A stretch of DNA of 64,000 nucleotides from Azolla caroliniana (GCA_043228905.1 JBHGNT010000011.1:20522001-20586000), one strand, 5' to 3'. Positions 34,272 to 37,200 are shown, counted from the stretch's first letter. The notes: a model not told the origin generated them from the sequence alone. A program made the numbers and translations.

Positions 34272-37200
34272 ATGGCGTTGGTGGAAGAGCGAGAAGAAGG
34301 TGAAGGCGAAGGTGAAGGTGAAGGCGAAGGTGAAGGAAAAGGAAAAGCAGGAGGTCCCCCCGTGGCGATGGCAGACTTAGGAAGAGGAGAAGGTTCCAGC
34401 AGATCCTCCCCCACTACTTCCGCTGTTCCCAAACGTCACAAACATTTCGAGATCAAGAAGTGGAATGCCGTTTCGCTCTGGGCTTGGGGTGCGTACGTCC
34501 GAACGTTTATACTGATATCTCCTCTGGACTTCATATATATATATATTTTGGTGTTTTGATCCTCTCTTGTATTTTGCTTTCTGTTTTCTCTTGCGACCAT
34601 GATTGTTCGGTATCGTTGTATTTTTCCAATCCTATCGTTCTTTCTCTTTTTATTCTTGCATGCTTATTAGGATCATGTTCTTTAACAGTGACAAATATTG
34701 TAATGGTAATGGCCAGTGTATAAAAAGAACATGATCCTAATAAGCATGCAAGAAGAAAACGAGAAAGACTGAATTGTTATTTTGTCTCGATTGCAAATGT
34801 GTTTTTAACAACCTTTGAGCAATTTTGATGCAAGCAACCCATCTTTTACGTGAAATAGATAGGAGTCCCAGATTCTGTATACCACGGTGGTATACAGCAT
34901 ATGTTCACTTTCAAAATAATAGGCTGTTGTCATTTTCAAGCTTTTGCGCATCAAGAATCAAGATTTAGCTATCAAAACTCAATAGACAGGATGGAAGAGA
35001 TACGCGGTGTATGTGAAAGATCTCAATGAAAGAAGTGAAAGAAAGAGATAGATAGATAGATGGATAAATATTTTTAGCGTCCATAGAGAGGCCAATATTG
35101 ACCCATGGGACCTAGGTACAAAAGTTATCTTGATGTGTGTCTCCTTCCTAAGAAAGGATATTCATACTTTGAAGCACTAAATCTCGATGTGTGAATAAGG
35201 CATCCACATATGAGCTCAACCTTCTAGGTGTTCTCTTTAGTGTGACACTCAAATCATCACCCCCTCTTAATATGTTATCATAACTTTCATGAATTGCATG
35301 TAAAAAACAAGTGATAGTCTTCCTCTGCTAGCCCCTCCTTGCATACCTTACATGCCTTTATATTTGGCTGATTTTGATTCCATTATGAAACTTCAATTCA
35401 TAGGTTGCGTGATTGAGTGTGAAGGAGTGTTAAGGCTCTAAGAGAGGTAGTATTCATGTTAGCAATGAGGTAAGGTTGAATACAATCAATAGGCCTTCTT
35501 GCCGTACATAGAACCCATTGTTCAGGATTGATGTTTGTGAGATAGAGAGCAAGGGGACAAAAGAAAGAAAGAAATTGACATTTTGGTATCTCTGTTTGTA
35601 CAGTAGGAAAATAGTAAAGACAAATTAGTGAAAAAACAATAAAGGTTTTTTTTCTGAGGTTGTAAAAGTGTCTGTTTGTGATGCTTTGTGGAACATCACT
35701 GATCATCTCTACGTGCATAAAGAATCATCTATTTATTCGAAAGGCTGTGTTTGAGTCACTAGAATCATCCTTTCAGAGCACACACAATATGCTATTTGAA
35801 TTTCGAATCAGTAAATGTCCCAAGATTTTTGTGATTAAGAAATGGAATGCTGTTAATCTTCTTTTCAAAACATTTTCATATAATGTAAACCTTGGCCTGT
35901 TAAACCATTTTTGAGTGTGCAAATATCCAATTCTATCATTCCATTCATCCTTTGAAATTATCACAAAGAATCACAAACAGACACTTTTACACGTTTGCAT
36001 AACAATAGATGCATAACAATATCCAATTCTATCATTCCATTTATGGTTTATCCATCCAATATCCACATGCGCATACACACAGGTACTCAAAAGGCTTTTC
36101 TCAAAAGAATTCTCATTTACACTTCATGATCAGTTCATGCTAAAAATCATAGTTTCCCCGACAATCTTTCAAGTTTCTAATCATTCATCACTTAATTCCA
36201 ACCCCGTTCTGTTTTTGTGCCAAAATATGCATTCATTTCTATTCTAGCATTCAATATTTATATTATTTGTTGTTCCAAGAAATTTCTTGCCCTGGATCCC
36301 TATTTGTTCATATGCAAGTGGCCTTTATAACTTCACAGTTTATCACAAAACGTGAATGATGACACATATTAAAGATTGGGTCTTGATATCACCTAAGATC
36401 CCATACGATTGATGATTGTCTAATGTGATGTTTACAGTTTTAGTCTTTCCTTAGTTTTGAATATTCCAGGTTGCAGTGTCTGGCTTATAATATCATAACT
36501 AAGTATTCATCAAATATAGTTTATAGCTTATGTGGATATTTAAAAAATGCCTCCACATTTGCATCTATTGTTAACTTGGTGTAAACTCAAGAGCATGCAT
36601 GTGATGATCGCTTCCCTATATTCAAGTTATTGCCTATGCTGTGATTTGGACAGAAAACAAATGACAAATGATCGATGTTTGATTAATTGTTCTTGGTTGT
36701 TATTTTAGCAAAGCAGAACCATTTTTAATTGATATTATCTTCTAATCCCTACGTTCCCTTTCTATTTCATTGATAACCCTTGTCTTGATATTAGAGACGC
36801 ACTCTTTAACTTTCATTTCATGTCAAATATCTTGACTCTTTATCTGTTTTGGTGGTCATGTTTCCATGTCTCAATGATCTAGTTATTTCTAAATATCCAT
36901 GTATGAAGATTTGTGATGATGTTTACATATATGGCCTCAATATAATGTAAATAAACCTTACCTATGTACATTTTTACATGTGCTTTTCACTCATCTATGT
37001 CACAGGGTTTATTTCATACCTGGCAATGTATATTCTTCTTTTCTTACTGGATTATCTCCTCCACCAGAGATTTATTCCTGACATTTACAAGCGTTGACAT
37101 GGAGAAGTCTCTATTTTATGATTGATTGTTCAAAATTTCTATTTTATGTCATGATTAGCATGTTTTTTGATGAGAAACATGGTTCCTCACATTGTTCCCA

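Follow-up and report, generated by a model that had tools for sequence, protein, structure and literature searches.

In gene-fragment pseudogenes and pseudo-exons, which result from partial or tandem duplication of exons, a copy derived from an exon can lie in the neighbouring intron with its strand unchanged, decayed, without splice sites and missing from the mRNA. Miniature inverted-repeat transposable elements (MITEs) are short units bounded by terminal inverted repeats and are found in plant introns. Poison exons, which are cassette exons coupled to nonsense-mediated mRNA decay (NMD) via the premature stop that their inclusion creates, are typically highly conserved, and microProteins, among them the plant LITTLE ZIPPER type with a single interaction domain and a dominant-negative action, are independent, expressed genes. 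In plants, end-joining repair is known to leave templated insertions, whose orientation may be forward or reverse-complement (PMC10923293). Here, these systems are compared with a feature found in intron 1 of the gene RBX1 in a stretch of 64,000 nucleotides of AT-rich eukaryotic DNA from Azolla caroliniana (GCA_043228905.1 JBHGNT010000011.1:20522001-20586000), referred to as the window. The feature consists of a 48-nt segment resembling exon 1 of the same gene, which we call the shard, and a 30-nt inverted repeat that encloses it.

A first-pass annotation of the window had offered three readings of this feature, namely (a) a decoy peptide that binds cullins, (b) a cryptic or poison exon looped out by the stem of the inverted repeat, and (c) a fragment captured from an RBX1 paralogue, and had given prominence to the first two. 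Only the last, in the form of a captured or relic RBX1 fragment, fits the evidence. In the reading that we prefer, to which we assign a probability of roughly 0.75, the shard is what remains, without function, of an old duplicate of RBX1, the inverted repeat is a separate and younger repair scar, the intron is spliced normally and the open reading frame (ORF) that contains the shard is fortuitous.

The host gene, defined by motif scan, by its sequence and by an RNA contig, lies on the + strand and has five exons (Table 1), which were searched individually and not as a joined protein. All four exon joints, with GT..AG ends, are present on one RNA contig of run X14. The start of intron 1 at the GT at 34489 places the end of exon 1 at 34488, a small correction to the earlier annotation. 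Exon 1 encodes an N-terminal tail rich in Glu and Gly followed by the cullin-binding strand, which ends in WAW, and the exon ends in phase 1. In a search of solved structures, the exon-1 peptide aligned with human RBX1 over residues 14-35 (E = 1.5e-4), and RING motifs were found in exons 2-4 by motif scan and tblastn. With an N-terminal cullin-binding strand and a RING-H2, and being both expressed and spliced, this gene is RBX1/ROC1. An intermolecular sheet of five strands is completed when the N-terminal strand of RBX1 joins the alpha/beta domain of the cullin (PMC4686759).

Table 1. Positions of RBX1 and of the features discussed, counted from the first letter of the window
Feature	Position	Strand	Basis or remark
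RBX1 exon 1	34272-34488	+	RNA joint 34487/8 to 37911/2, GT..AG ends
RBX1 intron 1	34489-37911	+	3423 nt; skipped exactly by two X14 RNA contigs, GT..AG ends; contains the shard and the inverted repeat
RBX1 exon 2	37912-37962	+	RNA joints; motif scan
RBX1 exon 3	38050-38109	+	RNA joints
RBX1 exon 4	38258-38329	+	RNA joints
RBX1 exon 5	38591-38628, to stop codon	+	RNA joint; sequence
Exon-1-like shard	35813-35860	+	Decayed copy of exon 1 34431-34478; lacks WAW codons and donor site
ATG ORF of 41 aa containing the shard	35789-35914	+	No homologues; RNA contig depth 0
Inverted repeat, left arm, probable template	35661-35690	+	Pairs at 29/30 positions with 35962-35991
Inverted repeat, right arm, probable inverted templated copy of left arm	35962-35991	-	In 64-nt segment between the direct repeats
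Direct repeat, copy 1, flanking right arm	35922-35953	+	91% identical to 36018-36049
Direct repeat, copy 2, flanking right arm	36018-36049	+	Same repeat comparison
Second decayed RBX1 piece (intron 3, exon 4, intron 4)	32294-32616	+	Stop in exon; about 2 kb upstream of gene
Abundant dispersed repeat, one copy	about 35076-35538		Ends abruptly at about 35538, just upstream of the inverted-repeat unit
Second intronic hairpin	34639-34768		In intron 1; 45-nt arms, 96% complementary, 40-nt loop, 150 nt downstream of exon 1

The shard and exon 1 are identical at 34 of 48 bases and at 11 of 16 residues in the same orientation, and the KKWNAV core is among the residues retained. An 18-nt core of the match occurs at only two places in the window, the shard and exon 1. 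When exon 1 was compared with intron 1, the local score was 22, and none of 500 dinucleotide-preserving shuffles reached this value (11.8 +/- 1.3, maximum 18). Similarly, the non-repetitive part of the exon-1 peptide scored 24.6 bits in tblastn, which was not reached in any of 200 shuffled windows (maximum 23.5). However, when the whole 5-kb gene was used as the BLASTN query against the window, the shard was found with an E value of only 0.077. The match is therefore convincing only as a comparison of exon 1 with its own neighbourhood, where gene, strand and frame all agree, and is not overwhelming by itself. The direct observations made in the first-pass annotation were reproduced: the codon alignment with exon 1, including six codons that differ only synonymously; the lack of both the WAW residues and a donor; the pairing of the arms at 29 of 30 positions; the ATG ORF of 41 aa; and an acceptor-like TTTCAG, at 35771-35776, with a stop soon after it.

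It is improbable that the 48-nt match is a chance resemblance with no homology to exon 1. The weak BLASTN value would be in keeping with chance, any exon-like stretch within 64 kb could have been noticed, and the 41-aa ORF does not retrieve RBX1 in PDB or Pfam searches. Two other weak RBX1-like tblastn matches in the window, 31917-31982 (- strand) and 33331-33360 (+ strand), are not significant at the DNA level (scores reached by 43/300 and 92/300 shuffles, respectively) and were treated as chance matches. Against this stand the scores in shuffled introns and windows, the agreement of the match with exon 1 in gene and strand, its single reading frame, the concentration of its mismatches at synonymous positions, and the presence nearby of a definite RBX1 relic, which raises the prior. 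Judged on these comparisons, the shard is very probably homologous to exon 1.

That relic, at 32294-32616, comprises parts corresponding to intron 3, exon 4 and intron 4 of RBX1. It was detected by BLASTN (E = 1.3e-11, 73% identity over 124 nt), and a gapped alignment extends over about 350 nt at about 70-73% identity, with indels. In tblastn it reads VCNHAFH and then a stop (TAG within the exon). Its divergence is similar to that of the shard, and it demonstrates that partial duplication of RBX1 followed by decay did occur at this locus. A tandem duplication of about 80 nt, at about 32620-32780, lies just after this piece.

No similarity was found beyond the 48 nt of the shard on either side; in the comparison with the flanks of exon 1, the 5' UTR and the start of the intron, it was confined to 35813-35854. 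The shard is unable to encode the product of its parent, as the match ends before the WAW codons, no donor follows and the frame is +1 relative to the phase of exon 1. Significant similarity, inability to code for the parent product and a location outside the mature transcript (in one run, at contig level) together define an RBX1-derived pseudogene fragment, and all three were found. The shard is thus like the gene-fragment pseudogenes and pseudo-exons in being a decayed copy of an exon, with the strand kept, in the intron next to that exon, lacking splice sites and absent from the mRNA, and also in having a second piece of the same gene nearby. It differs in that it amounts to only about one fifth of the exon, in that the extent of the original duplication is no longer visible, and in an excess of synonymous differences that suggests a former working copy.

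This excess had been taken in the first-pass annotation as evidence that the shard is not decaying neutrally. The 14 differences are distributed over codon positions 1, 2 and 3 as 3, 4 and 7, which alone is not significant (p = 0.15). By the Nei-Gojobori method, pS is 0.74 and pN is 0.19 between the shard and exon 1 (Fisher p = 0.005), and when 14 changes were placed at random, at least six synonymous-only codons arose with a probability of 0.001-0.005. Under a null model in which the exon accepts only synonymous changes and the copy decays freely, the observed pattern was obtained in 0.3-2.6% of trials. These values come from 16 codons only and are not corrected for the way in which the match came to notice, namely through its good translation. 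The claim is therefore statistically defensible, but no present function is needed to account for it as past constraint suffices. The excess is probably due to a functional exon that changed only synonymously together with a copy that once resided in a working RBX1 duplicate.

Two further observations fit this explanation. At five of the six synonymous differences, exon 1 has C or G and the shard has T or A (four sites are C/T and one is G/A), as would be expected from deamination in silent DNA. In addition, exon 1 of a related species (locus L001, see below) differs from exon 1 of the window at three positions, all synonymous, and has the state of the shard at one of them. This indicates constraint on the functional exon, and that at least one of the apparent synonymous differences arose in the lineage of the functional exon. 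Synonymous-looking divergence in a fragment of 16 codons is no evidence of present function.

The transcript evidence bears on the reading of the shard as part of a poison exon, in which the acceptor at 35776 would be used under some conditions, leading to a premature stop and NMD, with the 30-bp stem controlling inclusion by looping out. In X14 the exons have RNA coverage, and a contig joins 34488 directly to 37912. No X14 RNA contigs were found on 35601-37835, and no joint leads into or out of the element. Entry at 35777 in the phase of exon 1 would bring a stop after 7 codons, as the first-pass annotation had envisaged, and the acceptor-like site with its immediate stop does resemble the arrangement in NMD-coupled cassette exons. 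NMD targets are also under-represented in contigs. However, no donor-like site with at least 6/8 matches to the consensus follows the acceptor or lies within the inverted-repeat unit. The stop arises whether or not the sequence resembles RBX1, which leaves the resemblance unexplained. As for the stem, it is predicted to form in RNA (minimum free energy -80.2 kcal/mol, compared with -66.0 +/- 4.9 for shuffles, z = -2.9), and this prediction is all that can be said for the inverted repeat as a hairpin. When the element was searched against Rfam (E <= 1), no known RNA family was found, and the only matches, to miRNA precursors and below threshold, were on a different hairpin (34627-34776). The stem is also young, and conservation, which is usual in poison exons, has not been demonstrated. 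With the direct splice joint, the lack of RNA contigs and of a good donor and the wrong frame, reading (b) is not supported, and a poison exon of this kind is very unlikely.

The decoy reading holds that the 41-aa ORF is translated into a RING-less microprotein whose RBX1-like strand occupies the cullin C-terminal domain. On paper this resembles the plant microProteins, as the ORF has the strand without the RING: it keeps 11 of the 16 strand residues, including the KKWNAV core, the corresponding strand of RBX1 completes the cullin sheet, and the synonymous excess is compatible with this reading too. Unlike those microProteins, it is represented by no transcript in the RNA contigs, it has no demonstrated conservation, and it retains only 16 similar residues with the WAW half of the strand absent. 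The ORF also lies deep in an efficiently removed intron with no evident promoter, and ORFs of such length are commonplace here: there are 11 ATG ORFs of at least 41 aa in intron 1 and 225 in the window. A PDB search with the ORF did not return RBX1 at E <= 10, and a Pfam search returned nothing relevant. In a large protein collection, within the length limits of the tool, no relatives sharing three 5-residue words were found for the 41-aa ORF or for the 78-aa open frame, and none of ten ORFs around the element had an exact match in the protein collection. These blanks say little, as such ORFs are rarely called as genes. The ORF is most likely fortuitous and reading (a) is not upheld; we consider a translated decoy extremely unlikely. 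A broader version, in which the shard is a lineage-specific regulatory module of RBX1, either a rare stem-gated exon coupled to NMD or a small ORF that titrates cullins, and the synonymous bias reflects continuing selection on the peptide, is also very improbable.

The inverted repeat has a different history from the shard it encloses. Its 30-nt arms are 97% complementary and lie 271 nt apart (BLAST E = 2.9e-7 with the 5-kb query against the window), and outside the arms the window has no further copy of the 21-mer that they share. The arms show one difference in 30 positions, compared with 14 in 48 for the shard, which indicates that the inverted repeat is much younger than the divergence of the shard. 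On either side of the right arm lies a copy of a 32-nt direct repeat; the two copies are 96 nt apart and 91% identical (26/27 in BLAST), and a small tandem duplication is found next to this arrangement. On this evidence, the inverted repeat looks like an independent local event and not a device built round the shard, and the earlier notion of a functional stem enclosing the shard is not sustained.

The unit is single-copy. In the DNA run X1, one contig of 7.5 kb covers 35474-38700 with 2 differing letters, and it is the only X1 contig on the unit at 80% likeness or more. The summed X1 depth over the unit equals the depth of this contig alone, while the neighbouring repeat piles up about 1000-fold. 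These data exclude a MITE family and a near-identical donor paralogue. In the bin 35750-35898 the depth is slightly greater, by about as much as secondary alignment of exon-1 contigs to the core of about 20 nt should contribute, and by far less than a near-identical donor paralogue of 48 nt would add.

With a length of about 330 nt, near-perfect 30-nt terminal inverted repeats (TIRs) and a location in a plant intron, the unit does resemble a MITE. We therefore considered whether a low-copy, TIR-bounded element (Pack-type or MITE-like) had picked up part of a diverged RBX1 paralogue before landing by chance in intron 1 of RBX1. The terminal inverted repeats of the 331-nt unit would suit such an element, a functional paralogue as donor would fit the synonymous excess, at least one other expressed RBX1 paralogue exists (see below), and there are MITE-like inverted-repeat units elsewhere in the window. 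However, no direct repeat of 2-11 nt that could be a target-site duplication was found around the unit, whichever offset between -3 and +3 was taken, the 464-Mb contig set contained no further contig matching the unit at 80% likeness or more, and the 21-mer of the arms had no match in metagenome contigs. The unit was rejected as a MITE on these grounds, and it also differs from MITEs in that one arm lies inside a local direct duplication. The paralogue that is visible in the reads has hardly diverged from exon 1 over this stretch, with one listed difference (G34475T), and so is no closer to the shard and is not its donor. Landing in the very gene that was copied would, moreover, be a coincidence. 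This route is unlikely.

The preferred reading, a relic of an old duplicate with a later repair scar beside it, would involve the following probable order of events. An old partial duplication of RBX1 would have given rise to an extra exon 1 or to a one-time paralogue, and this copy would have spent time in a working gene copy before breaking up. The shard would then have decayed to its present identity of about 71%, losing the WAW codons and the splice donor. Later, the right arm would have been laid down as an inverted copy of sequence 270 nt upstream, together with the 32-nt direct duplication. The combination of an inverted copy, a flank duplication and odd filler would be the footprint of a templated (filler) insertion made during repair of a double-strand break. 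At present the whole intron, shard and stem included, is spliced out normally.

As in templated repair insertions, a short reverse-complement copy of nearby sequence is found here together with a short direct duplication and small local repeats. With 30 nt copied in inverted orientation over a distance of 270 nt, this case ranks among the larger of those commonly described, and the candidate insertion is known from its anatomy, no pre-insertion allele having been recovered. The dispersed repeat just upstream adds plausibility. Other copies of this repeat, and the contig L001 of the related species, continue past 35537 with a common sequence that the window lacks, and the truncation at 35538 indicates that the region was broken and rejoined, which makes a templated insertion plausible.

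Some points weigh against this reading. The RNA evidence consists of the assembled contigs of a single run, from which rare isoforms are dropped, and NMD targets would be rare. Among related species, the contigs of run X11 have a hole over the shard and arms, and L001 ends in a repeat before reaching them. The synonymous excess lies above the model of a neutral relic and a constrained exon (P about 0.003-0.026), so that the copy must be taken to have been under coding constraint for some time. Finally, the origin of the inverted repeat by templated insertion is one that we infer from its anatomy alone.

Data from related species were available for parts of the locus. In run X2 (organism B), 35836-36223 was found without differences. 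At 34260-35031 and 37237-37910 this run appears to contain two versions of the locus, one identical to the window and the other with the variants of organism C (about 8-10% diverged), which would fit a hybrid, an allopolyploid or a mixed sample. In run X11 (organism C), contigs from the start of the intron are about 92% identical to the window and none cover 35601-37388, although this hole in the contig set proves nothing. An ORF of a related species that reads through from exon 1 (P0001) led to two contigs, L001 and L002. L001 is collinear with the window to 35538 and then consists of a full-length copy of the dispersed repeat to the end of the contig, so that the element is never reached. 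A scan of metagenomes with the exon-1 peptide found no relative.

The dispersed repeat is abundant, with hundreds of DNA contigs piling up at 35076-35538 in X1, X2 and X11, that is, in at least two species; the region of pile-up around it is 35005-35600. A few RNA contigs of low depth also fall on the repeat. The second intronic hairpin, nearer to exon 1, has only sub-threshold Rfam matches, to plant miRNA-precursor families, and DNA contigs break there. In the related species (L001:1107-1197) a single arm of this hairpin is present, with the loop in the opposite orientation. The hairpin thus arose or flipped recently, and local inverted duplication or inversion is therefore recurrent in this intron, which adds to the plausibility of a templated insertion at the inverted repeat.

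That the genome has a second, expressed RBX1 paralogue at another place is indicated by an RNA contig and DNA contigs that match the end of exon 1 (34445-34494, with G34475T) and exon 2 (37908-37963) and have other upstream sequence and another intron. The RNA contig of this paralogue and the window gene are of comparable depth. In the window gene, the Glu/Gly-rich tail (34290-34345) is encoded by a GAAGGT/GAAGGC repeat, and in the related species (P0001) the tail differs in both length and composition, with a Gly/Ala run followed by a Glu/Gly run. Given this difference, the tail is a fast-evolving, microsatellite-like coding repeat located 5' of the conserved strand. Elsewhere, the inverted-repeat units at 285-571 and 25345-25556 share a terminal sequence of about 33 nt and probably belong to one MITE family, which, unlike the unit in intron 1, has more than one copy in the window.

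Read as a relic beside a repair scar, the feature in intron 1 of RBX1 is an ordinary one of little consequence, and would be one more case of exon shards and repair scars building up in the long introns of a fern gene. If the fragment were expressed, a RING-less competitor for cullins or a hairpin-gated poison exon would represent a new way to tune all cullin-RING ligases at once.

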